Positions 15,557 through 56,855 of a stretch of DNA of 64,000 bases are shown in pieces. Both the position numbers and the translations under genes were made by a program. Position 1 is the first letter of the stretch. Each line of letters begins with the position of its first letter. The notes under the pieces were generated by a model. It saw only the letters and a program-made list of their open reading frames with translations. It ran no database searches and was not told the origin of the DNA. The stretch is from Isurus oxyrinchus (lineage: Eukaryota). The stretch covers positions 163,618,001-163,682,000 of the forward strand of contig JANJGN010000009.1 of the NCBI GenBank assembly GCA_026770705.1. The letters run 5' to 3'.

Positions 15557-15593
15557 ATGTGGATTTTGATTCTCCTCATTAGTTCTCTGCCCG
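15557..15593 (+). CDS. Copy 1 exon 1, signal peptide (MWILILLISSLP)
   Basis: ATG, hydrophobic leader and phase-1 donor G|GTGAGT. This is the usual split-leader layout of IgSF genes. Confidence 0.85.
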
Positions 15594-18500
15594 GTGAGTG
15601 ACAGCCAGAGCTGGATGTTCCGATATTCTGAGTTGGTTTAACTCTCGTGCGCTGGTTATACAGGAGATGTTTAAATATTTGGAGACATGCAAAGGCACAA
15701 GAGAGGTCTTGGGCACAGTGGGTAGTGTCTCTGTACCTGAGCCAGAAGCTCTGTGTTTGAGTCCCACTTCTGTTCTTGTTGAGAATGGAAGGCGCGTTCT
15801 AACCAGGACCAACAGATTGATTATCAACCTGAAAATCTACCAACAGACCGAAGGCTGGTGGTAAGAGGGTTTGAGATCCGAGTCCAACATGATTGATGTG
15901 GAGTGGTGCCGCTCATTCTGTTGTCTCCGGAGGTTAGTGACCTGTTCCAGGGAAAACAAGCTTTGGAAAGCAAAAGTAAACATGTGCTTTGACTGCCGCA
16001 TCCGTCTCTAGATGTGGGAAGTCTCCTAAGTCTAAAGGCACAAAATAGTCAGCAAAACCAAATGAGTAATAATTGTGAAGTATTTTATTACCCTGTGAAT
16101 TAACTATCACAACATGGGAATAGTTAACAAATAAACTGAACTGCATTATTAATTATGAATGATAAATAAAGGAGAATTAAATTTTCAGAAAGCTATGCAA
16201 GCAACATTTTGAAAATGAAAACCTTTTTTAATTGGTAATTTTCAATATAATCTGATGTCCAGTATAGACTGAAGACTGCAGCGGTAATAATCCCACAAAT
16301 AAAACATGTCCCAAGTTGGCGAATATTTCTGTTTTTGAAAGTACAGTTGATGAAATATTGTGTTATGAGGCTCTCTCAGTGACACTGTTCCTCACTGGTA
16401 GATGGTTGGTCTACATCACTCTTCTCATAAGTAGCCTTTTCTTGTTCATTCTTTAACTTTAAGAAACTAGATTTTGCTCATCACTCAGTATTGCCACCTC
16501 TCCATCATTTCGATGAATCTATTTTATAACACACAATGTTAAACTCCCAGCCCCATCTGCTCTTAACCACCTCCCCAAAATAGTTTGTGCCTCTAGCTGA
16601 TCAATTTTATGCAGAATACTTGATGTACTTATGGACAGGAAACTGAATCATGTTTCTGTCTGTTTGGCAATCTTCTTCTTTTCAATCCTTCCTCTTTCTG
16701 ATCTGATCTCTTTCCCATTCCCTTTACATCTGTAACTTTCCCTGTATCTTTTTCCTTTCCTTCATTTCTCTCTAGCCATTTAATTATTTTCAATCTCTCT
16801 TTTGTTATTTTAGTGCAAACTCTTTCCCCACAGCATGAGTTTCTCTCCCAGCAAGGCCATTGGTCTCATGAACGTTCAAGTCAAGGCATCCAAATCCCTA
16901 CCTCAGGAATCCATCCATACTGTAAGGCCACCTATCACACAACCTCGCAAACTTTCAAGACCTTCAAATCCTACCTTTGGACATCCCTAACTCATTCAAG
17001 ATCTGAACAACCCCTCCTGCAAGGACACAACCCTACCCCGCACCCCACCCACCTCAGATCAGAGCAGGGAACTGTCGGCTCCTGTGACCACCTCCACACT
17101 GCTCCCCAGCCGACTGCAAATCAGGCCTGTCAATCAGACTGGTTTCTGGCTGTGGAACCTCCTGATGATGTCATACGCAGTCTAGGGTGAAACCCCAAAA
17201 TATGAGGCAGAACCCCAATTTCCAGGTTCCCTCACTCTACTAGCCCCTGCCAATATGTCAAGAAAATGTCCCAATTATCTCACGAGTATATCATTGTCTG
17301 AGACGTGCTTTGGAACCACAGTGAGGCTCTGATAAGTGTCTATATGAATGATTACTCTCATCACAAACTGGATGGAATTTAACTCATTAAAATGCATCTG
17401 TTTGAATTAAGCAGTTATTTCCTGTTCAATTCCTGAAATGTTGTCTCCTCAGTTTCAGGTGCATTGTGGGCAAAAGACAGAGTAACAGGAGTTGTGGGAA
17501 GAGCGATCACAATAGAATGTCACTATGATGCACAGTGGTACAAGTCACATATAAAATATTGGTGTCGCGGCTGGACTCGCCAGTGTAATGTTGTAGCATC
17601 GACAAATTGGCGAAATGGAAGAATATCGGTCACAGATAACAAGTCACAAGGATTATTTATTGTTACTATGGAGGATCTTCACTCAGGAGATACAGGATGG
17701 TACAGCTGTGCTATTGAAGTAACTGGCCACGATCCAATGTTTAATGTAAAGCTACAAATATCTTACGGTACATTTCTTACTGATTTTCTTTATTACTCTC
17801 GACTGAAATGTCTGCTCAATGTTTTATCTGGGAGGAAACATGACAGCTCCGATATCCCGAGGCTCCACAGCAATGCAGAGACTTAAAGGTAAAGGGCAGT
17901 GGTCGGGAAATCCGACTCATGTTACCCAAACCCAATTCATGGCCTGTCCAACATGTCAGAGTTGAACTTTACAAGTGAACTAAACGGAAATTGAGAAGTT
18001 GTTTTGATGGTAAAAGAAGCCTCTTTATTAATTGTTGAGACATTGGGCTGGATATTCAGCCTCAAAGCGGGTAGGGGCAATTCGGAAAATTCCCCGCTCG
18101 GCCTTGGAAGAAAGTGCCCACAAAGGTGGGATTTCCATTGCTGGGAGCTGTGCCCGGGCTGCAGTCTGGCCAGCCACACCAGGAAGAAATGCAGAGGCAG
18201 CCACAGGGGCTGCCGGCTGCGGAGACGGGCTGTTTAAAAGGCCCCTCCTTAATGCCCTTGGACTTTGTAACAGCTAAACTCAAAACACAAAGGCCCTTCA
18301 CCCCTCACCCCTCACAGCCCACAAAGGGGGTGGATGTGAGGGGAAAATTTGTCATGAGGGGGCTTGGAGGTGGGTGGAAGTGTACAGCTTGAAGTCAGGA
18401 GCATGAGGGGGTATAAGGCGTGGGTATAGGGATAGAGGGGGAACGAAGGGCCAAGCGGGTTGGATGGGGGTGTGACTTGACATAGCGGGCATGAGATGCA

Positions 18501-21500
18501 CCTTTTGAACTTAGCTGTTAAAAGATCCCCTCATGCAGACCAGTGTTTACAGCTCCTCTGAGGATCTTTGGACTACGACTCAATCAAAACCTGGCCCGAG
18601 TCCATGAAAATTGCAGAGGAGTGGGACGTCACTTTGGTCTGAAGGCTGCACAAAGCACAGGGTAGAGGCCCTGGACTAAGACACCTGCCTTTATCTTGTA
18701 CAGAAAGTGTTCACATGTGAGTGACATGAACATTGCTCATCAAAACAAGGAGCGATAGGCAGGGAGACATTCTTTGGAGTTTATTGACAATAATGAACAG
18801 TATGTACAAGTGATTAACACCCGTGCCCAGGACGTGAAACTACTTCTCCTCAACCACGCGGTGTCTGGCAGCACTGTTGAGACCTTCTGTGCTCAGTGGG
18901 TGACCACGGGGGTTGGGGTCCTTTATCCAGCCTCTTAATCACATTTTGGTTTGATGTTGTAAGTGTCCTTTAAATCATGTCTTTGGTTTTGCAGTGACCC
19001 TAACTTAGGGGCTGCGTTTTATATTATCCCTCATTTTGTTAATTTAGTTTATTGGGTTGGCTTTAAAAGAGCTACATCTTCTCAACTTTCCTAATCCTCC
19101 CGCTACATCTTGGTGCTCCGCAGACATCCACAGTGGAGGTAAAGACAGTCTGCTGACTGCTATGCTCTGTCTGTGATAACTTTGGCGGGCATCCTCTGGA
19201 GGCCTGAGGCCTGTAGGGCCCCGGCTTCCTTTCGAGGTCCTACTGTGTGGCATTAGCACCCTCCTTGTCCTGTGGACTGGGAGCTGTCCAGGTCACAGTA
19301 AGAGGGGAGTTACCAGGATGAATGGCCCCGGAGGGTACACATGTTGATCCTTCTCGCTATGGGTACCCAATGGCCATTGGCTGAATCCTTGAGGAGCAGG
19401 TGTAGCTGGAGTGAGATCGAGCTGCCTGCACCCCTCTCGCATACACACTGTCAGGGGCCAACTATACATCAGCAATGGAGTTCAGCCCTGCAGCAGTGTA
19501 GGAACGATGCCCTGGACCAACGTCTCCATGGCAGCTGCCATCCTACCAGTGTTGACCTCGGTGCAGTGACATGCCGGCGCTATCACCTCAGAGTGCAGGC
19601 GGACGGACTCCTCCATTGTGCCTTGCAATCTGAGGGGTGCAGCAGATATCCCTTCCTGATGTTCCCGCGTTGGCCTTTCCAGCTCCAGCAACTGTGACAT
19701 GACCAAATCCAGAAACGCGTCACCTGACTCGAACTCAGCAAATTTATGGCCTCCAGCTGCCCACTGAGTGCCGGACACCTGGGAAGCCCCTGCCGCTGCC
19801 AGCTGTGGATCAGGCAGTGCAATTTGCTCACCAGCTGTGACCCTGAGTCTACTCTAAAGCTAGATCTCACCGAGGGGTGTGCCTCTGCACTGGTGGAGGG
19901 TGTGGGTGAGGGGAGTGACGGTACATCAAGGAGGGTCCCTCCAGGTTCCTCTTCAGAGATTTCTTTGGGGATTACTTGGTGTCCCTGGTTCTCCATCGGC
20001 TGTTTCCCAGATGTGCGTGTGGAAGCAAGTGGAAATATTTTGTGCATGGCAGTGGCCTGTGAAACAGGACACATCACTCACAGCATGGTTGTCTGATGGA
20101 TGTTGCACTGCTGGACCCTCACTTGGCTGAGCACCGCAGACCTCACCGTCAGAACAGGATTGGTCCAGGCCGTTGCCGGCCAGCTGGATGGCTCTGTTTA
20201 CAAAGTACTAGTACTGTTCGGGAACATGATGTTCATATTTTCATACATGTCGCTGAATTTGTCAGTCACATTTATGCCTCTATTATCAACCAAAGAGCGG
20301 GATTGTCCCCGATTTGCACTAAGTGCGTTAGTGGGCGGGGGAATCGATGTTTTACACACCGGCCACAATGGGGGGTTTTCAGGCCGCATCGTCCCAAACC
20401 CAACGCATTAGTTATGCATTCCCGGGAAACATACCATTTCCATGGTGAGTGGGATCTCATTCACCCCAAACACCATCATTTCACTGCTTCATCAGGCCCA
20501 GCACCATATGTAAAGTCCAGCCTCGTGCACACATCTCAGTGTTTCCAACCCAGGACCACTGCAGGGAAGATATCCCCAAGAGGCAAAAAGACTGTAGCTC
20601 CCAGGTTTAGTGAGCTGTCACTGCAACACATTGTGTACACTGTGGGGGCCCTGCTGTGATGTCCTCTACTCCCACTCTGGCTGCAGTATGGACAGCGCTG
20701 TGACCAACCAGGCCTGGGAGGCGGGGGCAGCAGTGGTATACCCACTGAATGTTATTAAGTTAACCCTCACTGTCAGATAATGTAAACAGTATGAAAAGTG
20801 TGGATGAGAAACCCTTAGAAACTTCCTTGCTGGATGGAAACAAATGCTGGAGAGAATGGAAATTTCTAAATGAAATGAGTGGATGCCTGATTGTTTTAGA
20901 GAATGAAATGCAGGTACAACAAATTTTTTAGGGATCTGAGGAGAGGGCTATCTTGCAATATGATGAAGTATAGAATATTGAGATTCTTAATTCAATTTGT
21001 TTCACACTTTTTGGTCACCATATTAACTGAAAATTTTATTTAAATGAGAGAAGGTCATCATCTAATCGTTTATTAATTGTGTTTAATTGTATGCAGTGGT
21101 GGCATTAATTGGTGATTCACTTGTGCACCTATAAACAGATGCAGACTGAAACTGCGGGTGGTGGATTTGATTAGATTCACACAGTAAACAGCACTTTAAA
21201 ACAGTTCCACAAGTCTTAACCTATCTAACCTCAGAGCTAATCTTTCTCTTTTCCGTTCAGCAACTAACACTGTAGATTTAAAAAGCTATAGAAGTGCAAT
21301 AATTTTACCACACAGTGCTTTCACATTGGGGTGTCCACTGACAGAAACTGGGTCTTCAGGTCTGGGCCTTGTTCACACTGTCTCCTGGGAATTCTGACCA
21401 GCTACCCTGCTGTCTTCAGGGAGATCTGGCCAACCATCCTGCTGTGTTCTGGGAGATCTAAGCAGCTACCCCCTCACATAGGCTTCAGTATTCCCTTAAA

Positions 21501-24500
21501 TGTGTTTCTTCTCTTTCATCTCTCTTTGTAGTACCCAGTCTGTTCAGAAATGCTTTTATCCCAGGATTGATTAAATCAATCTTTACTTTAATTCTTAGAC
21601 TTGTAAAAACAAACGTACCCTATCTTTATGTCACTTCATGACACCTTTTTACAACCTGCATATATCCCCCTTTGAACTAAAACAAATTAATTCAAACTAT
21701 TCCTGTTATTGCTTCATGTACAAATCTGTTGAAGTTCTTTTTTGTTCATTAACATATCAAAACCACTTCTTACTGTTGACTTTTGACCCTATCCACTGAT
21801 GAGGCAGTCCACGTCATGGAACCATAACCTTAAATCTGGAGATAGGCTCGTCAGGGATGTCAGGAAGCACTTCTTCACGCAAAGTATAGTGGAAATCAGG
21901 AACACTCTCCTCAAAAAAGCTCTTTAGTTCAATTGAAAATTTCAAAACTGATTGACAGATTTTATCTGGTAGCAATATTCGGGTTATGGGACCCAGGTAG
22001 GTAAATGGACAGAAGATACTGGTCAGTTGGGATTTAATTGAATTGTGGAACAGGCTGAAGGGGCTGCATGTCCGAATCCCTTTTCCATGTTCTGGAGCCC
22101 CAGTTAATTTTTCAGTGGTCTGGGCCTTGTGAGTAACAATGTGCTGTGAAACAAGCTCACAAACAGTTAGCATTTCAAAGAGACACTTTCCAATCACCAG
22201 GCAAACTGTGACCTGTGTTGTTTCAGAGTACAGTTTGTGACAGTGAAAGCAGTGAAGGCCTGCCAAACCTCACTAAAAATGTTGGTGAAAGTGTCACTTT
22301 TCTCTGGCTAATCCCTTGACCAAAGAGGGAATTTTAATTTCCCTCCCCCATCCTGCATCGGGTTGAAGCATGATGGGATTTGCTGGATCCAGAACCTTCT
22401 CCAGCACAGCTTGTGATCCAGGAGACACACGAAAGCTTCACCCCCACCCCCAGGCAAATGTTTTATACAATTTCTCCCTCCCCATGATTGGCCAATCCTG
22501 CCCCAAGCAGCAAAGTCACCCTGACTCCCTCCTCGCTGCTGTGCTCCGAGGACAAATTCCCACCAATTTCTCCCATGTCCAGTTCCCAAACCCAAATTTA
22601 ACATCCACCCCATAGAGTGGTAGATGTGTTGGTGAGATTCCAACATGGCAGAGCCTGGCTGAGATGAAGTGCAAAGTTTGAAGACTATTTGATTATTAAA
22701 TGTTCAGTATCTGAATGTTTCTTTCTTTCCAACAGAACCCGTGTCTGTTCCTGTGCTTAGATTTTCATCACCGCTAAATGTCTCATGTTCTGGGGGTTCA
22801 GTGTCCGTCTCCTGTGAGTCTGTCCAGGGATCCCTTCCCATTCAGTACACATGGTATGAGAAGACCCTGCCTGAAGATTCAAAGATCTCTGACACCAATA
22901 AACTGGATCTACATTGTCAATCCTTCAAACAGCAACATCATCAATATTACTGCACAGCCTCAAATAATCAGGGAGAAAAATCCAGTGACACTGTCACTGT
23001 TAACTTAACACTCATGAATGTAACAACGAAAAGCTGCAGTTATGTGATACAAATTGGAAACATTGGTAAGTGTTACTTTCTACAAACAATGTGGCGAATG
23101 AATGTCTTAAATTCATGTCTATCGAAACTGGTCACTGTTTCAGTTCCTTCAGTCAATCTGAGAAATTGCAACTGGCCAAATTCACTCTCTCTGGTTCCTC
23201 AAACATTCTGAACAAGGTCACTAAGTTGCATTTTTCATGAAAAATGGACAGGATCAGAAAATATCCCCAAAACATGCAAAAATATTGCAGAATCTCCAAC
23301 AAACCCATCGAATCAAAATAGCATTTGATTGACAGAGCTTTCATAAAGCAATTTGTCTATTTCCAGCAGATGGTATTGTGAAATGCAACCTCCAACTGTT
23401 GTGTCCTAGTTTGGGAAGGATATCACTGATAGAATAGAGAAGAATTGAATTAAAATGAACCCTTGGATGAGAGGTTTTAGTCATGAGGAAAGTATCATCA
23501 CAACTGAGGTGAATGACCAGCTGGAGGACGTGGAAATTGTTAGAAATTTGGATAAGGTAACTCTAACTATTTCCACTAGTCAGTGAGTCAGCAACAAGAG
23601 AGCATTAACTTTAAAATTATCACTAAAAGGACAAAGGGAGAAATTTGGAGAATTTTATTGATGCAAACTGTTTTTAGGACATGGAATGCCCAACTGAAAT
23701 AAGTTTACAAACAAATTTAATAATAGATTTTAAAAGGGAAACAAATGTATGAGGGTGTGGGAAAAGGACAATGAAATGGAATTAAATGAGGAGATCATTC
23801 AGAGAACCAGCATTGGAGCGATGGGCTGAATTCCCTCCCCTGTGTTGTAAAAATTCCATCATTCCGGTCAATATCTCAAATTATCCTGTATAAAAAATTT
23901 GTTCCCTCCCCATAAAACAATGACCCTGGTTCTGACATAAGGAGGGCTTTAGCCTATTTGAATGTAGCGGTTCAATTTTCTGCAGAGTGGGTGCAGCATG
24001 TTCACCGAGAAACACCAACATGGGCACAAAACAAAGAGAATCACATTTTCACCTGAGCAGCAGGAGACAGGAATTTACATATGCAAATATATTGACTCTG
24101 GTCATGTGGTCTCTTGCCTCAGTTGTCAGGGAAGAAGGGTGGAATTTTACACCCCCATTGCGCCAGGGACTGGGCTGTAAAATGCAGCCAGCCATTCTAA
24201 ACTCCATGCACTCCAGCAGGACCATAAAATCCCACTGTCACAAGGCTCTGAGCAAAGGCTGTCAGCAGCAGGTAGAAATTACCCCTGTAAACTGTGTTTG
24301 TACTGGAGTTGTCAGCAGGGACTCAGTTCCACTCTGACCTTTGATGCCAGTCTTTTGTAGTTACAAGTTCCCCTTAAGAATTAAAATTCAGGCTGATACC
24401 ACTGTCCAGCACTGAGGTAGTGCTATACTGGTGGTGGTGCTGCTGTGTAGATGAGGTGTTAAACTGAGGATCCACATCCCCCTTAGGTAGATGTAAACAT

Positions 24501-26942
24501 TTCCAGGGTATTATTCACAGAATAGGGAAGTTCTCCTGGTGTCCTTGAAGCCTTTATTCCTCAACCAATACACACAAATTGGGAGCAGGAGCAGGCCACT
24601 TGGTCTTTTGAGCCTGTTAATGTCACTACAAAACAGATCATCTAGTGAATGTTTTACTGATGTTTGTGGGGCTTTATTGTGTAGGAATGAACTTCCACGT
24701 TTCCCAACATTAAAACTTTGGCTTTACTTCAAAAAAGTACTTCATAGGCTCTGAAGCACTTTGGAATATCCCAAGGTTGTGAAAGGTGATGAATCAGCAC
24801 AACTTGTTTCTTACTTTTTGAAACAAACCATTTATTAAAATACATCTGAACCAATTATCTGAGTGCAAACTGCAGGGGGGGGAGGGGGAGGGAGGAGCCA
24901 GTCCCAGCAGCAAGGTGGTCATTATAATTAAATGGTCCGAAAATCACTGGCAGGTTTGAGACATTCATGGTCAGTGGGTGAAGATTCTCATCTTTACTGC
25001 AAGCTCAGAAAACTGCCCCCAAAGTGCAGAAAGTGACCATTGCCAGTATTAGGATGTGACTGTTTAATGTGTTCACATGAAATTCATGTCAAGAATGTGT
25101 ATCTCTGGATTGCAGTCCACCAACTTGAGCCCTTACCAGGCCCACTTCTAACTCTGTCCCACCAACTCTCAGATATAGGAAAGAATGTGGAATTACCAGT
25201 AAAGATAGATCACCATCAGGTATCAGCAACCTCTCCACTTGTGACCAGAGAGGGGTAAATTACACAGAAATCAATTCTACCTGCCAGGCTTTTCCTCAAT
25301 TAATGAGGTTCCATTTGACAATGATGCTCTCTCAGTTGACTACAAGTGAAAATGAGGTGAATCTGAATGTTATTCCCTTGTGTCAACAGGACCTGAGTAT
25401 TGTTGTGAAGCTTGTACAAGAGTATCACCAACTACATATTTGACAAGTACAGATATAATTTCCACTACCAATCGAGCCACAACTTCAGATCCCGAAAATG
25501 CTGAAAGGTACAATGTTCTCATGGATTGGCATTGCTTCCATATGTGAGAGATACAATTGGCCAAAGGAGTGAAAGTTGTTCATTAATTGTAAAGTAGCTC
25601 ATCAGAATGGAAATGGTGGCTGGGTTTATATCATGCTGTTGTGTTAGCTTCTTAATGAGGCTGCATTTTTCTGTTGGAAAATACAAGCAAGGAGTGAGCT
25701 TTTCCATTGTGTTGCCGCTCAGATGGTGTTTTTTGCCTTATTCACCTTGATTACTTCACCGCTAAGGTAACCTCACAGTGTGTGAGGAGTTGTACTTGTC
25801 AAACTTACCTTGCTGCTGTCTACACTGACAGAGTGGTTGTATTTGGGCTGATGAAAAGGAAGAATTAGCGTGATATATCTGCACATCCCTTGGTTTCACT
25901 AATGAGAGACATCTTGCAACTCTGGTCCCGTTTCCATATGATTAGCCTGAGCTGTCGACAATAAGTAGCAGAAATTGTAGTCCGATGTAAACACTCAGGA
26001 ACCGGGTCTTTGAAGTTACAATGGTGATAAAGAGAAAACGCCAACTAAATGTCAAACAGAAAGAGGGACAGTTGGAAATGGGCAGCAGGTATGTCCGCAG
26101 CTGTGGAGAAAATAAACACGTTCATGGTTTGGGTGCAGACACTTCTTCAGAATTCTAGTCCACACACGAAGCGAAGCAGGTCCACTCACCCCACAGATCC
26201 CAACTGAGCTGCTGAATGTTTCCAGAATCTTCTGTTTTCCATTCATATTTCTAGCACATGCAGTGCACTTACTTTTATCCAGATTATTGTCAATGATTTA
26301 AAAAGTATTGAAAGTCTAGGGTCTGAATTTTCCGCTCGGCGGGGGTGGGGGTGGGGTAGAGCGGGAGCGAGCACGGGCAGCTGTGGACCCCATCGCCATC
26401 CACCATCGGGTTTTTGACGCCATTTTGCGCGGGCGGCCAATTTAGGCCATCCCAGCGTATTTCCCGGCTCCCGAGGATAGCGGCAGTGGGCGAGAAGCGG
26501 GGGGTGTGCACAGACAACCGGGTCCAATGGTGACCCAGCGGCCTGTTTAAATGAAGGCCTGGCAGCCTGTTCCAGCTGCTCACAATGGCCAGTGCAAAGA
26601 ATTTTCACTTACAATTCCGCTTAGCCTTACAGTTAGACATTATGGACATGCTAAAGAAATTTGCTTCGTTTGATTTTTATCTAATGATCATGAAGTTGAT
26701 AAGTAGAACTTTAGTTGATTCTTTCAGCTAAAGTCCCTTGTCTACTTTATGTTGCTGCAAAAAATTACAGTGTAAAGCGGAGAGTCATGTTTCAAAAATG
26801 AAACAGTCTCATTTCATTTAAATGGTTTGATATTTCTTCTCTTTTGCTCAGTTACATTATCTGGGATGTGATACGCTGGGTGCTCTTTACTCTCCTGGTG
26901 ATTTGTGCTGTTTCGGGCACATGGTGTACGAGAAAATCTAAG
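15557..26942 (+). CDS. Copy 1 spliced gene: CD300/pIgR-like (CMRF35-like/MDIR-like) two-Ig-domain type I receptor. Exons 15557-15593, 17453-17767, 22736-23065, 25390-25507, 26852-26942, plus uncertain cytoplasmic exon(s)
   Basis: Five GT-AG exons join in compatible phases (1,1,1,2,0) into 297 stop-free codons: MWILILLISSLPVSGALWAKDRV...CHY...KYWCRGWTRQC...DTGWYSC...ISYEPVSVPVL...YYCTASN...GNIGPEYCCEACTRVSPTT...ENAESYIIWDVIRWVLFTLLVICAVSGTWCTRKSK. Confidence 0.88.
17453..17767 (+). CDS. Copy 1 exon 2, V-type Ig domain of the CD300/pIgR/TREM class
   Basis: Acceptor ttgtctcctcag. Motifs ITIEC-H-Y, KYWC-x6-C (extra C-C' disulfide), RISVTD and DTGWYSC. Phase-1 donor G|GTACAT. Confidence 0.93.
18045..20745. 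mobile_element. Rearranged Harbinger-family fragments in intron 2; unit B copy at ~46963-49657
   Basis: 18630-20190 is clearly similar to 32720-34080 (e.g. MSQLLEL..Q/PAREHQEG..AA.LRLQG.MEES). 20570-20745 resembles the Myb first exon on the + strand. Confidence 0.7.
18855..19071 (+). mobile_element. 5'-truncated L1/Tx1-like retroelement (217 bp) with a 15-bp TSD; unit B copy at 47767-47983
   Basis: Flanked by CTAC(T/A)TCT(C/T)CTCAAC at 18840-18854 and 19072-19086. The related uninterrupted site is at ~32931-32946. The insert reads HAVSGSTVETF..W / GLGSFIQPLNHILV* plus a T-rich 3' UTR. Confidence 0.65.
22736..23065 (+). CDS. Copy 1 exon 3, C2/I-type Ig domain (FcRL/PECAM-like)
   Basis: Acceptor tttctttctttccaacag. 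Sequence EPVSVPVL...VSVSCES..GSLPIQYTWY...YYCTASN. Sequons NVS, NLT, NVT. Donor G|GTAAGT. Confidence 0.9.
25390..25507 (+). CDS. Copy 1 exon 4, Cys-containing Thr/Ser-rich stalk
   Basis: Acceptor ttattcccttgtgtcaacag. Reads GPEYCCEACTRVSPTTYLTSTDIISTTNRATTSDPENAE. Phase 1 in, phase 2 out (AG|GTACAA), matching the TM exon phase. Confidence 0.8.
26852..26942 (+). CDS. Copy 1 exon 5, transmembrane segment with Asp and Arg
   Basis: Acceptor tttcttctcttttgctcag. Reads SYIIWDVIRWVLFTLLVICAVSGTWCTRKSK, with a basic stop-transfer motif and donor AAG|GTGAGA. Confidence 0.88.
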
Positions 26943-26987
26943 GTGAGAGTTATGGACTGTATAAGAATCATTATGGGCAGTTTGCAA

Positions 26988-27912
26988 TGTTATGATGTGG
27001 CAGATGATGTGTGTCAGGCAGACCAAATCCACGAGTGAAACTTGGTCGAGCTGTCACAACGGTTTTGCAATTTATATTTATTATGAGATGCATGCACTGA
27101 ATTCAGACACCATAAGTCTACCAAACTTTTAGAGATTTAAAAAATATATCGTTAAATATATTTATTAGCAAAAGATAGATTTCAATTACATACATAAGTC
27201 TACTAATTTCTTCTATAATAACTCGTAAAATTCCTAATTAGCCTCACTCCCAGTTACACCTCCTTTAAGGCAACTGTACAAAGAATAGATATTAGGTTTC
27301 AAGCAGATCCAGCAAATTGACACAATGATCTAGACAGTGGAATTCCAAATGGCTTTCACCAGCTTCAGTTTCGTTAGACAGCAGGCTTATGCACAAATGC
27401 TGGAGGCTTCATTAAGGCTACTTCAAACACATCTGTTAGGTCTCATATGGACTTCTCCTGACACATAGCCTCATTCTCCTTTATATATGTTTCCCTCTAT
27501 TTAACATGTAAACCCTATTGTTTCAGATACCTTTGAAACTGTGTCTTCCTCACAATGTAAAAACTTTCATGTCGATACTATATATTGTCAGTAACCTTTG
27601 AGATAAAGAAACACATTCCTTCATCTTGCTTAGCTGCCTAATTGTAAAGAGACTAAAATACTTTTGAAATCCAAATCTCCCTTCATTTATCTAAAAAGGC
27701 AAATTCCCTTTACACTTTACTTGCTAAACCAGTATCCATGTTTACTCATTAGCATGTCAAATACCTAGCTTCTTTTGTTGAGTTATATCATGCCATCTAC
27801 CTGATTCCAAATGTAATTAAATCTCACACAGACAGACCCAAACACTTACCCCCATAAACCGACTCCACAATAAAGCAGAAAATATTATGAAAATTATTAT
27901 ACTTTCATGACA
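26988..27912 (-). mobile_element. Solo LTR (925 bp) in the intron after the TM exon; unit B copy at 56901-57825
   Basis: Termini TGTTATGA...TCATGACA, flanks GCAA/GTAA. Minus-strand TATATAAAG (~27480-27488) lies upstream of a minus-strand AATAAA (~27161-27166). Confidence 0.65.
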
Positions 27913-28015
27913 GTAAATTCTCCATCAATTATTTCAAAAACATTGATCACAGATATTGTCAAGAAAAACTTGCATTGATGTTAAGGTCCACAGATTGAAA
28001 CAAGGTGTTTTACAG

Positions 28016-28058
28016 ATTCTATGGGCAGAATCATCTGAGATTTGCACAAAATGCCGTA
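28016..28058 (+). CDS. Copy 1 candidate cytoplasmic exon (ILWAESSEICTKCR)
   Basis: Flanked by gtgttttacag and GTGAGT, open in phase 0, and lying in non-repeat sequence between TEs. Not otherwise validated. Confidence 0.35.
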
Positions 28059-28229
28059 GTGAGTGGGAAAAAGGACATCCCGGGTGTGAAAAAACAGCAC
28101 AGACCAAGACCCTGATTTCCCAGTTTTTACTGGTGTTCCATGTTAAAGTATATGAGCCCCACTCAGGCCCGTATTCTTATTTCCCATTTTTTACTGTTTG
28201 TCCCTTCTGGGATATTATCCGCCGGCTGC

Positions 28230-43285: not shown

Positions 43286-43427
43286 GTGGTACAAATCAGC
43301 AGTAATTTGTGGCAATTCACGATTCATTGGCTTTTTTCTTCATCGTCAAAAGTTGCTGATGATTTTCACATTAAAAGAGGTGTTTGTTGTTCATATCCCA
43401 TTATATTTTCAGTACGTTCTAGCCCAT

Positions 43428-44330: not shown

Positions 44331-44373
44331 TGTGGTTTCATGACCTGGCTTCCTGCTATCTTCTTCCTCATTT
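44331..44373 (+). promoter_or_regulatory. Putative proximal promoter module of copy 2 (RUNX plus ETS/PU.1)
   Basis: Same motifs as copy 1, unchanged. Confidence 0.45.
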
Positions 44374-44473
44374 AAATTCCTTGTATCATTTATATTAGAC
44401 ACTTATTTCAATGTGAGAAACAAGAGCTGAGTGTCTGGAAACAAGTTCTGTCCTGATCTTTGTGAACAAAATG

Positions 44474-44510
44474 ATGTGGATTTTGATTCTCCTCATTAGT
44501 TCTCTGCCCG
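44474..44510 (+). CDS. Copy 2 exon 1, signal peptide
   Basis: (M)MWILILLISSLP, donor G|GTGAGT. Confidence 0.85.
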
Positions 44511-47500: not shown

Positions 47501-50500
47501 ACCTGGCCCGAGTCCATGAAAATTGCAGAGGAGTAGGACGTCACTTTGGTCTGAAGGCTGCACAAAGCACAGGGTAGAGGCCCTGGACTGAGACACCTGC
47601 CTTTATCTTGTATAGAAAGTGTTCACATGTGAGTGACATGAACATTGCTTATCAAAACAAGCAGCGATAGGCAGGGAGACATTCTTTGGAGTTTATTGAC
47701 AATAATGAACAGTATGTACAAGTGATTAACACCCATGCCCAGGACGTGAAACTACATCTCCTCAACCACGAGGTGTCTGGCGGCACCGGCGAGACCTTCC
47801 GTGCTCGGTCGGTGACCACGGGGGTTGGGGTCCTTTATCCAGCCTCTTAATCACATTTTGGTTTGATGTTGTAAGTTTCCTTTAAATCCTGTCTTTGGTT
47901 TTGCAGTGACCCTAACTTAGGGGCTGCGTTTTATATTATCCCTCATTTTGTTAATTTAGTTTATTGGGTTGGCTTTAAAAGAGCTACATCTTCTCAACTT
48001 TCCTAATCCTCCCGCTACATCTTGGTGCTCTGCAGACATCCACAGTGGAGGTAAAGACAGTCTGCTGACTGCTATGCTCTGTCTGTGATAACTTTGGCGG
48101 GCGTCCTCTGGAGGCCTGAGGCCCGGAGGGCCCCGGCTTCCTTTCGAGGTCCTACTGTGTGGCATTAGCACCCTCCTTGTCCTGTGGACTGGGAGCTGTC
48201 AAGGTCACAGTAAGAGGGGAGTTACCAGGATGAATGGCCCCGGAGGGTACACATGTTGATCCTTCTCGCTATGGGTACCCAATGGCCATTGGCTGAATCC
48301 TTGAGGAGCAGGTGTAGCTGGAGTGAGATCGAGCTGCCTGCACCCCTCTCGCATACACACTGTCAGGGGCCAACTATACATCAGCAATGGAGTTCAGCCC
48401 CGCAGCAGTGTAGGAACGATGCCCTGGACCAACGTCTCCATGGCAGCTGCCATCCTACCAGTGTTGACCTCGGTGCATTGACATGCCGGCGCTATCACCT
48501 CAGAGTGCAGGCGGACGGACTCCTCCATTGTGCCTTGCAATCTGAGGGGTGCAGCAGATATCCCTTCCTGATGTTCCCGCGTTGGCCTTTCCAGCTCCAG
48601 CAACTGTGACATGACCAAATCCAGAAACGCGTCACCTGACTCGACCTCAGCAAATTTATGGCCTCCAGCTGCCCACTGAGTGCCGGACACCTGGGAAGCC
48701 CCTGCCACTGCCAGCTGTGGATCAGGCAGTGCAATTTGCTCACCAGCTGTGACCCTGAGTCTACTCTAAAGCTAGATCTCACCGAGGGGTGTGCCTCTGC
48801 GCTGGTGGAGGGTGTGAGTGAGCGCTGTGATGGTACATCAAGGAGGGTCCCTCCAGGTTCCTCTTCAGAGATTTCTTTGGGGATTACTTGGTGTCCCTGG
48901 GTCTCCATCGGCTGTTACCCAGATGAGCGTGTGGAAGCAAGTGGAAATATTTTGTGCATGGCAGTGGCCTGTGAAACAGGACACATCACTCACAGCATGG
49001 TTGTCTGATGGATGTTGCACTGCTGGACCCTCACTTGGCTGAGCACCGCAGACCTCACCGTCAGCACAGGATTGGTCCAGGCCGTTGCCGTCCAGCTGGA
49101 TGGCTCTGTTTACAAAGTACTAGTACTGTTCAGGAACATGATGTTCATGTTTTCATACATGTCGCTGAATTTGTCAGTCACATTTACGCCTCTATTATCA
49201 ACCAAAGAGCGGGATTGTCCCCGATTTGCACTAAGTGCGTTAGTGGGCGGGGAAATCGATGTTTTACCCACCGGCCACAATGGGGGGTTTTCAGGCCGCA
49301 TCGTCCCAAACCCAATGCATTAGTTATGCATTCCCGGGAAACACACCATTTCCATGGTGAGTGGGATCTCATTCACCCCAAACACCATCACTTCACTGCT
49401 TCATCAGGCCCAGCACCGTATGTAAAGTCCAGCCTCGTGCACACATCTCAGTGTTTCCAACCCAGGACCACTGCAGGGAAGATATCCCCAAGAGGCAAAA
49501 GGACTGTAGCTCCCAGGTTTAGTGAGCTGTCACTGCAACACATTGTGTACACTGTGGGGGCCCTGCTGTGATGTCCTCTACTCCCACTCTGGCTGCAGTA
49601 TGGACAGCGCTGTGACCAACCAGGCCTGGGAGGCGGGGGCAGCAGTGGTATACCCACTGAATTTTATTAAGTTAACCCTCACTGTCAGATAATGTAGACA
49701 GTATGAAAAGTGTGGATGAGAAACCCTTAGAAACTGTCCTTGCTGGATGGAAACAAATACTGGAGAGATTGGAAATTTCTAAATGAAATGAGTGGATGCC
49801 TGATTGTTTTAGAGAATGAAATGCAGGTACAACAAATTTTTTAGGGATCTGAGGAGAGGGCTATCTTGCAATATGATGAAGTATAGAATATTGAGATTTT
49901 TAATTCAATTTGTTTCACACTTTTTGGTCACCATATTAACTGAAAATTTTATTTAAATGAGAGAAGGTCATCACCTAATCGTTTACTAATTGTGTTTAAT
50001 TGTATGCAGTGGTGGCATTAATTGGTGATTCACTTGTGCACCTATAAACAGATGCAGACTGAAACTGCGGGTGGTGGATTTGATTAGATTCACACAGTAA
50101 ACAGCACTTTAAAACAGTTCCACAAGTCTTAACCTATCTAACCTCAGAGCTAATCTTTCTATTTTCCGTTCAGCAACGAACACTGTAGATTTAAAAAGCT
50201 ATAGAAGTCCAATAATTTTACCACACAGTGCTTTCACATTGGGGTGTCCACTGACAGCAACTGGGTCTTCAGATCTGGGCCTTGTTCACACTGTCTCCTG
50301 GGAATTCTGACCAGCTACCCTGCTGTCTTCAGGGAGATCTGGCCAACCATCCTGCTGTGTTCTGGGAGATCTAAGCAGCTACCCCCTCACATAGGCTTCA
50401 GTATTCCCTTAAATGTGTTTCTTCTCTTTCATCTCTCTTTGTCGTACCCAGTCTGTTCAGAAATGCTTTTTTCCCAGGATTGATTAAATCAATCTTTACT

Positions 50501-53500
50501 TTAATTCTTAGACTTGTAAAAACAAACTTACCCTATCTTTATGTCACTTCATGACACCTTTTTACAACCTGCATATATCCCCCTTTGAACTAAAACAACT
50601 CAATTCAAACTATTCCTGTTATTGCTTCATGTACAAATCTGTTGAAGTTCTTTTTTGTTTATTAACATATCAAAACCACATCTTATTGTTGACTTTTGAC
50701 CCTATCCACTGATGAGGCAGTCCACGTCATGGAACCATAACCTTAAATCTGGAGATAGGCTCGTCAGGGATGTCAGGAAGCACTTCTTCACGCAAAGTAT
50801 AGTGGAAATCAGGAACACTCTCCTCAAAAAAGCTCTTTAGTTCAATTGAAAATTTCAAAACTGAATGACAGATTTTATCTGGTAGCAATATTCGGGTTAT
50901 GGGACCCAGGTAGGTAAATGGACAGAAGATACTGGTCAGTTGGGATTTAATTGAATTGTGGAACAGGCTGAAGGGGCTGCATGTCCGAATCCCTTTTCCA
51001 TGTTCTGGAGCCCCAGTTAATTTTTCAGTGGTCTGGTCCTTGTGAGTAACAATGTGCTGTGAAACAAGCTCACAAACAGTTAGCATTTCAAAGAGACACT
51101 TTCCAATCACCAGGCAAACTGTGACCTGTGTTGTTTCAGAGTACAGTTTGTGACAGTGAAAGCAGTGAAGGCAGCCAAACCTCACTAAAAATGTTGGTGA
51201 AAGTGTCACTTTTCTCTGGCTAATCCCTTGACCAAAGAGGGAATTTTAATTCCCCTCCCCCATCCTGCATCGTGTTGATGCATGATGGGATTTGCTGGAT
51301 CCAGAACCTTCTCCAGCACAGCTTGTGATCCAGGAGACACACGAAAGCTTCACCCCCACCCCCAGGCAAATGTTTTATACAATTTCTCCCTCCCCATGAT
51401 TGGCCAATCCTGCCCCAAGCAGCAAAGTCACCCTGACTCCCTCCTCGCTGCTGTGCTCCGAGGACACATTCCCACCAATTTCCAAACTTTTACCGTAACT
51501 TTCCTACTTGGAAACCAGCCAAACTTTCAATCAGTGTGCAAGAATTCTGGTGAGATTTTGCTGTTAAATTCGGTACAAACTCAACATTCCTGGTATTTCC
51601 AGCTTTCTCACCACCCCACACACAGTCCCCCCTCTCGTCTCCACGTACCAGGGTTGAAGTGTTCTATCGCAGCATGCAGAGAACCAGAGCCAATCACATT
51701 TACATTCTTATCCAAAGCTACAAAACATGTAACCGATATCTGACAACATTTTGCCCTCATTTTACCCTTTGCTTTTCTAAGATTCTCTCCAACTAATTCA
51801 CATTCAACTCACAAACAATGAAACAGCATTGGAGGCTCACTACCAGCTACAAAGAGATATTGTTCACCATGATATTCATGTTAACATACTCTCAGTATCA
51901 TAGCTGCTGTTCTGATCTGGAGACCTGATTTGTTCTGATATAATGGCTGAAAGGGTAACTCAGGCCTCTAAGAGAATGGAGAGATATGGGGATGGATTTT
52001 TAAAAAGTATGGGGTCAGGATTAGAGATGGGTGGGTATGAAATTTGACACCGCTGGTCTCCATGCCAATTTACCATTACAATCTCAAGCCCGAAACATTT
52101 AGAAAGCGGGTGGCTTGCAGTCAAGTGGTGGGCAGCTAACTTAGGAAATAACATTTACCAAAGGGGCCAATTAAAGACCCATTCCTGCACCCACTGGGAT
52201 TCCATTCAGCAATGCAAGCAGACCACATTGCCCCTTCAGGATCATGGCCCGGCAGCTGCCGGGTTTTGAAACATAAAAAAAACTTACCTGGACTTTCCCC
52301 TTGCTGTCTCCATGCTCAGGTCAGCAACTCCCACCTCACCTGGTGAGGCCCTCTAGCATCAGGAGCCCGCCCTCTGTCCCTGATTGGATGGTGAGCCCAG
52401 TTCCAGGCTTTTGATTGGCTAGAACATTGAAAATTGCAGTGGGCATGCCTAAAGAATGGTGAATGGTGTCAGGACCTGAAACTATCTCCCATGTCCAGTT
52501 CCCAAACCCAAATTTAACATCCACCCCATAGAGTGGTAGATGTGTTGGTGAGATTCCAACATGGCAGAGCCTGGCTGAGATGAAGTGCAAAGTTTGAAGA
52601 GTATTTGATTATTAAATGTTCAGTATCTGAATGTTTCTTTCTTTCCAACAGAACCCGTGTCTGTTCCTGTGCTTAGATTTTCATCACCGCTAAATGTCTC
52701 ATGTTCTGGGAGTTCAGTGTCCGTCTCCTGTGAGTCTGTCCAGGGATCCCTTCCCATTCCGTACACATGGTATGAAAAGACCCTGTCTGAAGATTCAAAG
52801 ATCTCTGACACCAATAAACTGGATCTACATTGTCAATCCTTCAAACAGCAACATCATCAATATTACTGCACAGCCTCAAATAATCAGGGAGTAAAATCCA
52901 GTGACACTGTCACTGTTAACTTAACACTCATGAATGTAACAACGAAAAGCTGCAGTTATGTGATACAAATTGGAAACATTGGTAAGTGTTACTTTCTACA
53001 AACAATGTGGCGAATGAATGTTTTAAATTCATGTCTATCCAAACTGGTCACTGGTTCAGTTCCTTCAGTTTATCTGAGAAATTGCAACTGGCCAAATTCA
53101 CTCTCTCTGGTTCCTCAAACATTCTGAACAAGGTCACTAAGTTGCATTTTTCATTAAAAATGGACAGGATCAGAAAATAACCCCAAAACATGCAAAAATA
53201 TTGCCGAATCTCCAATAAACCCATCGAATCAAAATAGCATTTGATTGACAGAGCTTTCATAAAGCAATTTGTCTATATCCAGCAGATGGAATTGTGAAAT
53301 GCAACCTCCAACTGTTGTGTCCTAGTTTGGGAAGGATATCACTGATAGAATAGAGAAGAATTGAATTAAAATGAACCCTTGGATGAGAGGTTTTAGTCAT
53401 GAGGAAAGTATCATCACAACTGAGGTGAATGACCAGCTGGAGGACGTGGAAATTGTTAGAAATTTGGATAAGGTAACTCTAACTATTTCCACTAGTCAGT

Positions 53501-56500
53501 GAGTCAGCAACAAGAGAGCATTAACTTTAAAATTATCACTAAAAGGACAAAGGGAGAAATTTGGAGAATTTTATTGATGCAAACTGTTTTTAGGACATGG
53601 AATGCCCAACTGAAATAAGTTTACAAACAAATTTAATAATAGATTTTAAAAGGGAAACAAATGTATGAGGGTGTGGGAAAAGGACAATGAAATGGAATTA
53701 AATGAGGAGATCATTCAGAGAACCAGCATTCGAGTGATGGGCTGAATTCCCTCCCCTGTGTTGTAAAAATTCCATCACTCCAGACAAAATCTCAACTTAT
53801 CCTGTCTAAAAAATTAACTATTCCCTCCCCATAAAACAATGACCCTGGTTCTGCCATAAGGAGGACTTTAGCCTTTTTGAATGTAACGGTTCAATTTTCT
53901 GCAGAGTGGGTGCAGCATGTTCACCGAGAAACACCAACATGGGCACAAAACAAAGAGAATCACATTTTCACCTGAGCAGCAGGAGACAGGAATTTACATA
54001 TGCAAATATATTGACTCTGGTCATGTGGTCTCTTGCCTCAGTTGTCAGGGAAGAAGGGTGGAATTTTACACCCCCATTGCGGCAGGGACTGGGCTGTAAA
54101 ATGCAGCCAGCCATTCTAAACTTCATGCACTCCAGCAGGACCATAAAATCCCACTGTCACAAGCCTCAGACCAAAGGCTGTCAGCAGCAGGTAGAAATTA
54201 CACCTGTAAACTGTGTTTGTACTGGAGTTGTCAGCAGGGACTCAGTTGCACTCTGACCTTTGATGCCAGTCTTTTGTAGTTACAAGTTCCCCTTAAGAGT
54301 TAAAATTTGGGCTGATACCATGATCCAGCACTGAGGTAGTGCTATACTGGTGGTGGTGCTGCTACGTAGATGAGGTATTAAACTGAGGATCCACATCCCC
54401 CTTAGGTAGATGTAAACAATTCCAGGGTATTATTCACAGAATAGGAAAGTTCTCCTGGTGTCCTTGAAGCCTTTATTCCTCAACCAATACACACAAATAG
54501 GGAGCAGGAGCAGGCTATTTGGTCTTTTGAGCCTGTTAATGTCACTGGAAAACAGATCATCTAGTGAATGTTTTACTGATGTTTGTGGGGCTTTGCTGTG
54601 TACGAATTAACTTCCACGTTTCTTGATATTAAAACTGTGGCTTTACTTCAGAAAAGTACTTCATAGGCTCTGAAGCACTTTGGGATATCCCAAGGTTGTG
54701 AAAGGTGATGAATCAACACACATTGTTTCTTACTTTTTGAAACAAACGATTTATTAAAATACATCTGAACCAATTATCTGAGTGCAAACGGCAGGGGGGA
54801 GGGGAGGGAGGAGCCAGTCCCAGCAGCAAGGTGGTCATTATAATTAAATGGACAGAAAATCACTGGCAGGTTTGAGACATTCATGGTCTGTTGGTGAAGA
54901 TTCTCATCTTTACTGCAAGCTCAGAAAACTGCCCCCAAAGGGCAGAAAGTGACCATTGCCAGTATTAGGATGTGACTGTTTAATGTGTTCACATGAAATT
55001 CATGTCAAGAAAGTGTATCTCTGGATTGCAGTCCACCAACTTGAGCCCTTATCAGGCCCACTAGTAACTCTGTCCCACCAACTCTCAGATATAGGAAAGA
55101 AAGTGAAATTACCAGTAAAGATAGACCACCAGGTATCAGCAACCTCTCCACTTGTGACCAGAGAGGGGTAAATTACACAGAAATCAATTCTACCAGCCAG
55201 GCTTTTCCTCAATTAATGAGGTTCCATTTGACAATGATGCTCTCTCAGTTGAATACAAGTGAAAATGAGGTGAATCTGAATGTTATTCCCTTGTGTCAAC
55301 AGGACGTGAGTATTGTTGTGAAGCTTGTACAAGAGTATCACCAACTACATATTTGACAAGTACAGATATAATTTCCACTACCAATCGAGCCACAACTTCA
55401 GATCCCGAAAATGCTGAAAGGTACAATGTTCTCATGGATTGGCATTGCTTCCATATGTGAGAGATACAATTGGCCAAAGGAGTGAAAGTTGTTCATTAAT
55501 TGTAAAGTAGCTCATCAGAATGGAAATGGTGGCTGGGTTTATATCATGCTGTTGTGTTAGCTTCTTAATGAGGCTGCATTTTTCTGTTGGAAAATACAAG
55601 CAAGGAGTGAGCTTTTCCATTGTGTTGCCGCTCAGATGGTGTTTTTTGCCTTATTCACCTTGATTACTTCACCGCTAAGGTAATCTCACAGTGTGTGAGG
55701 AGTTGTACTTGTCAAACTTACCTTGCTGCTGTCTACACTGACAGAGTACTTGTATTTGGGCTGATGAAAAGGAAGAATTAGCGTGATATATCTGCACATC
55801 CCTTGGTTTCACTAATGAGAGACATCTTGCAACTCTGGTCCCATTTCCATATTATTAGCCTAAGCTGTTGACAATAAGTAGCAGAAATTGTAGTCCGATG
55901 TAAACACTCAGGAATCAGGTCTTTGAAGTTACAATGGTGATAAAGAGAAAATGCCAACTAAATGTCAAACAGAAAGAGGGACAGTTGGAAATGGACAGCA
56001 GGTATGTCCGCAGCTGTGGAGAAAATAAACACGTTCATGGTTTGGGTGCAGACACTTCTTCAGAATTCTAGTCCACACACGAAGCGAAGCAGGTCCACTC
56101 ACCCCACAGATCCCAACTGAGGTGCTGAATGTTTCCAGAATCTTCTGTTTTCCATTCATATTTCTAGCACATGCAGTGCTCTTACTTTTATCCAGATTAT
56201 TGTCAATGATTTAAAAAGGATTGAAAGTCTATGGTCTGAATTTTCCGCTCGGCGGGGGTGGGGGTGGGGTAGAGCGGGAGCGAGCACGGGCAGCTGTGGA
56301 CCCCATCGCCATCCACCATCGGGTTTTTGACGCCATTTTGCGCGGGCGGCCAATTTAGGCCATCCCAGCGTATTTCCCGGCTCCCGAGGATAGCGGCAGT
56401 GGGCGAGAAGCGGGGAGTGGGCACAGACAACCGGGTCCAATGGTGACCCAGCGGCCTGTTTAAATGAAGGCCTGGCAGCCTGTTCCAGCTGCTCACAATG

Positions 56501-56855
56501 GCCAGTGCAAAGAATTTTCACTTACAATTTAGCTTAGTATTACAGTTAGACATTATGGACATGCTAAAGAAATTTGCTTCGTTTGATTTTTATCTAATGA
56601 TCATGAAGTTGATAAGTAAAACTTTAGCTGATTCTTTCAGCTAAAGTCCCTTGTCTACTTTATGTTGCTGCAAAAAATTACAGTGTAAAGCGGAGAGTCA
56701 TGTTTCAAAAATGAAACAGTCTCATTTCATTTAAATGGTTTGATATTTCTTCTCTTTTGCTCAGTTACATTATCTGGGATGTGATACGCTGGGTGCTCTT
56801 TACTCTCCTGGTAATTTGTGCTGTTTCGGGCACATGGTGTACGAGAAAATCTAAG
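44474..56855 (+). CDS. Copy 2 spliced gene: paralogous CD300/pIgR-like two-Ig-domain receptor. Exons 44474-44510, 46371-46685, 52652-52981, 55303-55420, 56765-56855
   Basis: Same exon lengths (37, 315, 330, 118, 91), splice sites and phases as copy 1, with no stops or frameshifts. There is an extra in-frame ATG at 44471. Confidence 0.88.
46371..46685 (+). CDS. Copy 2 exon 2, CD300/pIgR-type V domain
   Basis: VSGALWAKERV...CHYDAWWYKSHIKYWCLGWTRQC...DTGWYSCGIDKTGQDPMFAVWLQISY. All four Cys are retained. Confidence 0.93.
52652..52981 (+). CDS. Copy 2 exon 3, C2/I-type Ig domain
   Basis: 5 nt differences from copy 1 (4 aa). Splice sites intact. Confidence 0.9.
55303..55420 (+). CDS. Copy 2 exon 4, stalk
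   Basis: GREYCCEACTRVSPTT...ENAE, one difference from copy 1 (P>R). Confidence 0.8.
56765..56855 (+). CDS. Copy 2 exon 5, transmembrane segment
   Basis: Protein identical to copy 1, with one synonymous change (GTG>GTA). Confidence 0.88.

Follow-up and report, generated by a model that had tools for sequence, protein, structure and literature searches.

An intact tandem pair of modular domain immune-type receptor genes of predicted activating type in Isurus oxyrinchus

The question raised by a 64,000-nucleotide stretch of the Isurus oxyrinchus genome (NCBI GenBank assembly GCA_026770705.1, contig JANJGN010000009.1, positions 163,618,001 to 163,682,000 of the forward strand), hereafter called the window, is whether two similar coding regions on its + strand are complete genes of a chimeric immunoglobulin (Ig) receptor, to which family they belong and whether the second is a real copy of the first. 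All positions given are those of the window. The locus is best read as an intact, tandemly duplicated pair of modular domain immune-type receptor (MDIR) genes, each predicted to encode a 308-aa type I membrane glycoprotein of the adaptor-coupled activating type, and a probability of roughly 0.75 was assigned to this reading. What results is a checked, transcript-supported gene model of a shark MDIR pair of putative activating type, which documents a V domain of the pIgR/CD300 type and a C2 domain of the FCRL type joined in one cartilaginous-fish protein.

Database searches were done exon by exon, and the six exons of each gene were joined in local scripts for frame, stop and difference counts. 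Two stop-free, phase-compatible genes were obtained, one per duplication unit, with start codons at 15557 and 44474 (about 28.9 kb apart), in agreement with an initial annotation of this DNA, which had placed two complete genes some 29 kb from each other. In both copies, six coding exons (Table 1) make up 927 nt with a single terminal stop, giving 308 aa; all introns are of the GT-AG type and the phases at the exon ends are 1, 1, 1, 2 and 0. The leader exon of gene 1 was matched at 92% by tblastn using residues 4-16 of a Scyliorhinus canicula protein (XP_038676045.1, below P0104).

All five exons of the initial annotation were retained, but a model of five exons is not complete, because it stops without a stop codon at a strong phase-0 donor, AAG/GTGAGA, which ends the transmembrane (TM) exon in both copies (26942/26943 and 56855/56856). 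A sixth exon is needed, and gene 2, for which an end at 56855 had been given, runs to near 60675. This short tail exon was not found by tblastn; it was recovered by scanning acceptor-anchored short open reading frames (ORFs) against the tails of homologs with a charged TM segment. Read in the frame that follows from skipping of the TM exon, exon 6 gives RHSTNQILTA and a stop in copy 1 and RHSTDQILRA and a stop in copy 2. Since this frame matches the C-terminus of the Carcharodon carcharias model P0177 (RHSRNQILRA and a stop), exon 6 was independently confirmed. An AATAAA hexamer is located at 30870, 108 nt beyond the stop of gene 1.

Several other boundaries were tried and discarded. Reading through the TM-exon donor after KSK, as a five-exon gene would do, adds 31 aa up to a TGA at about 27035 and is unlikely, as the donor is strong and the sixth exon conserved. 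A V-exon acceptor at 17458/17459 was rejected as the contigs of three sequencing runs start at 17452 and homologs read LPVSGALWA. Likewise, C2 donors at 23019/23020 (phase 0, score 3.2) and 23038/23039 gave way to the one at 23065/23066 (score 9.1), which is backed by homology and by a contig of run X1, and a longer stalk exon reaching 25543 was dropped because an end at 25507 agrees with the homologs and with the TM-exon frame. At the start of the V exon, two acceptor AGs stand six bases apart (cag/tttcag/) at 17445-17460 and 46363-46378. RNA-like contigs take the upstream one; the downstream one, if used, would remove Val-Ser at the signal-peptide cleavage region.

Table 1. Positions of the exons of both genes and of other features of the window.
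Feature	Position	Strand	Evidence or remark
Gene 1 exon 1, leader: ATG and signal peptide (MWILILLISSLP + 1 nt)	15557..15593	+	Donor G/GTGAGT, phase 1, score 10.4
Gene 1 exon 2, V-set Ig domain with two disulfides (CD300/pIgR type)	17453..17767	+	Phase 1 to 1; Pfam, PDB matches, RNA-like contigs
Gene 1 exon 3, C2-set Ig domain (FCRL5 type) and conserved CSYVIQIGNI extension	22736..23065	+	Phase 1 to 1; Pfam Ig_3/Ig_2; donor TTG/GTAAGT, score 9.1
Gene 1 exon 4, stalk (G)PEYCCEACTRVSPTT...DPENAE, 35% Ser/Thr	25390..25507	+	Phase 1 to 2; sequence read, Carcharodon P0177 74%
Gene 1 exon 5, TM helix (S)YIIWDVIRWVLFTLLVICAVSGTWCTRKSK	26852..26942	+	Phase 2 to 0; donor AAG/GTGAGA, score 10.7
Gene 1 exon 6, coding part TLNESDPHSLT and TAA	30727..30762	+	Match to tails of charged-TM homologs
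Gene 2 exon 1, leader	44474..44510	+	Mapped from copy 1, 0 differences
Gene 2 exon 2, V domain	46371..46685	+	24 nt / 14 aa differences from gene 1; Pfam V-set E 8.5e-9
Gene 2 exon 3, C2 domain	52652..52981	+	5 nt differences from gene 1
Gene 2 exon 4, stalk	55303..55420	+	Mapped from copy 1
Gene 2 exon 5, TM	56765..56855	+	Mapped from copy 1; splice donor at end
Gene 2 exon 6, tail and stop	60640..60675	+	Mapped from copy 1
Duplication unit, copy 1	9950..34093	.	Part alignable inside the window; self-BLASTN and MAFFT
Duplication unit, copy 2	36445..64000	.	Reaches the window end; self-BLASTN and MAFFT
27-bp minisatellite	8434..10439	.	Left edge of the duplication; self-comparison
Assembly gap (N)	38106..38615	.	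Intergenic, within the copy-2-only insert 37683-40108; CA-rich compound repeats 38645-39181 directly after

Splicing was followed in an alignment of reads and contigs that spanned 17400-23399; the kinds of the runs (X1, X2 and X3 RNA-like, X12 DNA) are guesses. In the first contig record of X1 (1117 nt), letters 96-410 lie on 17452-17766 and letters 411-742 on 22735-23066. This gives the V-to-C2 splice 17767/22736, with a one-letter ambiguity (G on both sides); the skip of 4,968 bases, with exact GT-AG ends, is as expected of spliced mRNA. Past 23066, its next 30 letters are the start of the stalk exon at 25390. Hence two of the junctions that the initial annotation had proposed to confirm with RNA, V-C2 and C2-stalk, are read in a copy-1-type transcript. 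The contigs of X1, X3 and X2 all start matching at 17452 and, with the extra G taken as the final nucleotide of exon 1, the V acceptor was placed at 17452/17453. This restores the VS of LPVSGALWA, which is read in all homologs. The matches being read from 17452 onward, the leader-to-V joint is a predicted one.

In the three small runs, coverage is confined to the V and C2 exons and to repeat-rich stretches of the intron, the unique intron stretches being empty; the DNA run X12 covers every bin. X1 carries the letters of copy 1, with seven mismatches in 647 nt. Copy-2 letters at 17533, 17534, 22860 and 22870 were read in X3 (same sample as X1), X2 and X12, together with letters of neither copy. 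As the runs carry all three kinds of letters, several family members or alleles are present and expressed, and the one sample behind X1 and X3 contains at least two different V-exon and C2-exon sequences. Copy 2 itself is presumed to be expressed. One low-depth X3 contig joins mid-V exon 17530 to the C2 acceptor at 22734 with five extra letters between them, and is probably an assembly chimera among paralogs.

By their length, the 375 letters of the X1 contig after C2 would fit stalk, TM and last exon, with an end about 18 nt past AATAAA. A transcript of this kind includes the TM exon and thereby speaks against the main product being a secreted decoy or opsonin-like protein, comparable to carp SITR and made by TM-exon skipping. 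Such a product would end in RHSTNQILTA, matching the C-terminus of Carcharodon P0177, after loss of the 91-nt exon; 26 of the 76 relatives described below have no TM segment, and a soluble CD300-like SITR is known in carp (PMC3031540). However, both copies keep an intact TM exon with strong splice sites, which shares 87% identity with its catshark counterpart, and many of the relatives without TM are partial models. A mainly secreted product was therefore considered unlikely. Skipping could still yield a secreted form beside the membrane form, like the one modelled for the great white shark (P0177), and may constitute a built-in membrane/secreted switch. The skip shifts exon 6 to a frame that ends after 10 codons, and this frame is conserved in P0177.

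The V exon was matched by Pfam V-set PF07686 with E 1e-9. Among solved structures, its best single-domain match is CD300f/CLM-1 (64.8 bits, E 8e-17), followed by pIgR D5 (42.3 bits) and D1 (36 bits) and, after these, by TREM2, NKp44 and the TIM proteins. Besides the usual cysteine pair (35/98), the domain has an extra pair (50/57) within YWCRGWTRQC, the second disulfide of the YWC-x6-C type. Over its whole length, the C2 exon can be aligned with FCRL5 domains 3-8, best with domain 4 (36.6 bits, per-domain E 4e-8); it carries a second Cys pair at 135 and 178 and ends in the conserved CSYVIQIGNI. The combination of a CD300/pIgR-type V domain with an FcRL-like C2 domain, as first annotated, was thus found again. 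Part of the C2 exon (22736-23013) also exceeds the Pfam cut-off for the 'C17orf99 Ig domain' PF17736 (27.6-28 bits), besides those for Ig_3/Ig_2.

From skates to sharks, the Cys of CSYVIQIGNI and the Cys of the stalk motif EY-x-C are kept; in the window genes the stalk reads EYCCEAC, with two more cysteines. The TM exon contains WDVIRW, with Arg near the outer end of the helix, and the cytoplasmic tail of about 16-19 aa is free of tyrosine motifs and of other signalling motifs. The Cys stalk and the Arg/Asp TM segment reported initially are accordingly both present, and the Arg recurs in 23 of 23 charged-TM relatives, in which the residue three positions earlier varies (D, K, N, S, T, M).

A search with the V exon against 1.84 billion representatives returned 2,113 matches. 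Its best single-V matches are elasmobranch proteins, and the nearest ones from outside this group are bony-fish 'pIgR-like' multi-V proteins with 34-45% identity. Clearnose skate MDIR2 is 62% identical over the V exon (E 3e-45) and 60% over the C2 exon (E 8e-40), and the TM exon is 57% identical to that of clearnose skate MDIR5, so that the likeness to MDIR suspected from the sequence alone amounts to clear homology. When catshark P0104, not the window protein, served as query, the search returned MDIR5 and MDIR2 under these names (E 5e-139 and 1e-71). Carcharodon carcharias P0177 is the closest sequence (V 85%, C2 84%, stalk 74%), and P0104 maps onto five of the six exons, namely leader, V, C2, stalk and TM, the last with 87% identity.

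MDIR are reportedly defined, following Cannon et al. in 2006, as a multigene family with charged-TM, ITIM-bearing and motif-less forms (ITIM, immunoreceptor tyrosine-based inhibitory motif). The corresponding traits were found here: homology of the ectodomain, a modular build, charged-TM, ITIM and no-TM forms among the relatives, and a spliced V-C2-stalk mRNA. Builds among the relatives comprise V-C2, as in the window genes, V-C2-C2 (P0073), V-C2-V-C2 (MDIR5), V-V (P0010) and V with a mucin stalk (P0150). A TM segment of the type [WY]xVxRW occurs in 23 of 76 relatives, mostly with tails of about 18 aa and in 21 of the 23 cases without ITIM. In another 24 the TM is uncharged and the tail, 69-136 aa long, bears ITIM-like motifs, three have an uncharged TM without ITIM, and the remaining 26 have no TM; charged, ITIM-tailed and TM-less relatives are present across sharks, skates and rays. 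ITIM-bearing partners, which had been suggested as something to look for along the scaffold, thus exist among the relatives, but in the window no further Ig or ITIM exon was found at E 1e-3.

In the V-domain tree, sharks and batoids are split into two clades, both with 99% support in the Shimodaira-Hasegawa-like approximate likelihood ratio test (SH-aLRT). Both window copies group with Carcharodon (96%), copy 2 being weakly nearer to Carcharodon than to copy 1 (81%). Lineage-specific expansions are seen in the tree, with no one-to-one orthology. That the locus is multigene and recently duplicated, as ascribed to it from the start, is upheld.

Judged by sequence, the window pair are genes of the elasmobranch MDIR family with an architecture that is already known, and not a new kind of receptor. 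The supposition that this exact architecture might be uncharacterised did not hold, as it is shared by skate MDIR2 and by NCBI gene models of many elasmobranchs, for instance Scyliorhinus canicula XP_038676045.1 with its order leader-V-C2-stalk-TM. Automatic annotation has given the relatives inconsistent names ('pIgR-like', 'Fc receptor-like 6', 'CXADR-like', 'CMRF35-like molecule 8'), which mask one family.

By another explanation, the genes would be the shark counterparts of pIgR, the Fc-alpha/mu receptor or FCRL, and hence immunoglobulin receptors. The summed V score is indeed highest against pIgR (1e-37 over several domains), FCRL5 is the best solved match of C2, and sharks were reported to be without recognised pIgR or FcR (PMC4016189, PMC5742104). 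Nevertheless, where pIgR has two to five tandem V domains and a long sorting tail, the window genes are limited to a single V domain and to a tail of about 16-19 aa, too short to have room for transcytosis signals. Taken as a single domain, V scores higher with CD300f (64.8 bits) than with any pIgR domain (best 42.3), its CDR1-like loop (CDR, complementarity-determining region) is unlike that of pIgR D1 in the alignment, and the lineage-specific expansions of the V tree stand against direct counterparts. An FCRL protein has a C2-only ectodomain and a tail resembling an ITIM or an ITAM (immunoreceptor tyrosine-based activation motif); here the N-terminal domain belongs to the V-set and the tail lacks a tyrosine motif. 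The second-disulfide V domain is that of CD300, but it is not the sole Ig domain, as the C2 exon is spliced directly behind it. On these grounds, identity with immunoglobulin receptors of this kind appears very improbable.

Relatives of FcR-gamma, pIgR and FcRL have been stated not to be found in cartilaginous fish (PMC4016189, PMC5742104). Because of the V and C2 domain matches obtained here, this statement is too strong as far as pIgR and FcRL relatives are concerned, and a passage of PMC3031540 already summarises the skate MDIR work of 2006 as indicating similarity of the pIgR/CD300 and FcRL types. It is a doubtful further step to regard the MDIR V-C2 receptors as cartilaginous-fish stand-ins for, or an ancestral-like chimera of, the pIgR/Fc-alpha-mu receptor/CD300 and FCRL lineages that binds shark immunoglobulin. 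If true, this would overturn the published statement and would make them the first shark candidates for Fc or poly-Ig receptors.

The MDIR pair is part of a tandem segmental duplication detected by self-BLASTN (Table 1). Its blocks pair 9950-11187 with 36445-37682 (95.5% identity), 11185-22570 with 40109-51482 (97.3%) and 22569-34093 with 52485-64000 (97.9%), where the window stops. In the full MAFFT alignment (22,878 aligned bases), the copies mismatch at 2.24%, i.e. they are 97.8% identical. Only copy 2 has an insert of 2.4 kb at 37683-40108, which contains the N gap, and one of 1,004 bp in intron 2 (about 51483-52484). No third unit was seen upstream, 1-9950 having no similarity to the unit end 26001-36445, and because nothing before 9950 resembles the unit end, copy 1 is the first unit on the upstream side. 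A counterpart of the 27-bp minisatellite, at 36437-36887, sits at the junction of copy 1 and copy 2.

The gap at 38106-38615 lies 7.3 kb past the stop of gene 1 (30762) and 5.9 kb ahead of the ATG of gene 2 (44474), and is crossed by no reading frame. CA-rich repeats, as found directly after it, are a frequent reason for assembly breaks. As false duplications often adjoin gaps, and as this gap is near the start of copy 2 and the copies are 97.8% identical, the second copy might be an assembly artefact in which two haplotypes of one gene were placed in tandem. Against this, the junction between the copies (about 36206-36445, in the minisatellite) runs through unbroken sequence, and homology to copy 1 restarts 1.66 kb ahead of the gap and carries on after it in unchanged order. 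The blocks on both sides of the insert 37683-40108 are directly adjacent in copy 1 (11185-11187), which supports order and orientation across the gap. Moreover, the differences are far beyond ordinary allelic ones (2.24%, inserts of 1,004 bp and 2.4 kb, 7.6% in the V exon), X1 and X3 hold at least two V-exon and C2-exon sequences in one sample, and copy-2 letters were read in X3, X2 and X12. Such an artefact, which the initial annotation had itself named as fatal to its claim, is thus very improbable; the unbroken junction and the 2.24% divergence speak for a real duplication.

The V exons of the two MDIR genes differ more than the rest of the units. The 24 differences in 315 nt (7.6%) compare with a background of 2.24% (binomial P 3e-7) and make the V exon the most divergent of 77 windows of 300 nt, with ordinary flanks on both sides. 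Sixteen of the 24 fall within 78 nt (17674-17751), which code for the E-F loop, the FG (CDR3-like) loop and the G strand, and the patch variants FNVKLQ and FAVWLQ both occur in genes of other species. The nonsynonymous (dN) and synonymous (dS) divergences are 0.082 and 0.080, so dN/dS is about 1 and the 19:5 split equals the neutral expectation; synonymous sites are raised as well (5 in 66 sites, P 0.018). There is therefore no support for positive selection acting on the V exon. Patchy gene conversion among family members fits the divergence better than point mutations under positive selection, a comparison of two sequences that is suggestive. The excess of differences in the V exon is real, and the term 'diversified' of the initial annotation is weakly supported at a dN/dS of about 1. 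Besides the V exon, one other stretch stands out, 24385-24984 in intron 3, where the units differ by 6%, nearly three times background.

The pair may be taken to illustrate how the family grows. A recent duplication of about 27-30 kb, with its edge in the minisatellite that would have seeded it, would have given rise to the two genes, and their V exons would later have been made unlike by patchy exchange, mostly in the one 78-nt patch and probably by gene conversion from other family members.

Repeats make up several other parts of the units. The minisatellite arrays 8434-10439 and 36206-37180 yield long spurious ORFs (+ strand 324 aa, E/V/T-rich; - strand Pro-rich) with no Pfam match. At 12100-14100 and 41029-42995, broken ORFs resembling a long interspersed nuclear element (LINE) are present and, being shared by both units, are older than the duplication. 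Pfam searches of the neighbouring ORFs gave a weak LINE endonuclease-reverse-transcriptase hint (E 0.008) and nothing else. A 1.1-kb element occurs in two copies per unit at 77% identity (e.g. 19072-20199 and 32931-34082). In intron 2 of gene 1 (18600-22000), repeats have very high coverage in the DNA run and appear in the RNA-like runs too; they are therefore high-copy and transcribed.

In the mechanism proposed for the MDIR pair, the V domain would be the ligand-binding head and the FCRL-type C2 domain a spacer, carried on a short, Cys-bearing, Ser/Thr-rich stalk and followed by a TM segment with Arg and a tail without motifs. In charged-TM members of the CD300, TREM, LILRA and Fc-alpha-receptor groups, a TM Arg pairs with Asp of an ITAM adaptor. 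By analogy, the Arg of the shark proteins would pair with the acidic TM residue (Asp) of an ITAM adaptor dimer of the DAP12, FcR-gamma or CD3-zeta kind, and ligand binding by the V domain would lead to leukocyte activation. Relatives with an uncharged TM and an ITIM tail would give the opposing signal. An adaptor-coupled activating receptor combines a basic TM residue, a short tail and physical pairing with an ITAM adaptor; the Arg of 23 of 23 charged-TM relatives and the short tails were observed, and the pairing is predicted.

Several points weigh against this reading. The read alignment stops short of the stalk-TM and TM-tail joints, the X1 contig may derive from a close relative or allele, and transcript support is of the copy-1 type. 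Carcharodon P0177, which among annotated relatives is the nearest, has no TM in its gene model. The Asp three residues before the TM Arg could neutralise the latter inside the helix. Finally, FcR-gamma has been stated not to be found in cartilaginous fish (PMC4016189, PMC5742104), so the adaptor partner is a putative one.

Compared with known systems, the shark genes share the FCRL5 type of C2 exon with the FCRL family. A V-type head is absent from FCRL proteins, which use ITIM- or ITAM-like tails of their own for signalling. With pIgR, the type of V domain is common, but pIgR has two to five V domains, no C2, an uncharged TM and a long tail. Mammalian CD300 has a V domain with the extra Cys pair, as in the shark genes. 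The CD300 family is likewise paired, some members having a charged TM and others an ITIM; the stalk is mucin-like and the genes are clustered. CD300 proteins have a single V domain and no C2 domain (PMC3031540), to which the shark genes add C2. Among elasmobranch proteins, Scyliorhinus canicula XP_038676045.1, named 'polymeric immunoglobulin receptor-like' (P0104), is identical in architecture, with a WDVIRW TM and a short tail, and the Carcharodon carcharias 'Fc receptor-like protein 6' (P0177) is a model without TM whose last exon is in the TM-skipped frame; both are automatic gene models under misleading names. Skate MDIR2 has the same leader-V-C2-stalk-TM order and, after C2, the same Cys pair CSxV...EYxC, but its uncharged TM and ITIM tail make it inhibitory, whereas the TM of the shark genes is charged and their tail short. 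In the latter respects they resemble skate MDIR5, with its TM YISWKVGRW and short tail KKRDESEPRHSAHELQ; MDIR5 has two V-C2 pairs, and the shark genes one. In the shark genes, the Lys before the Arg is replaced by Asp and the stalk has two additional cysteines.

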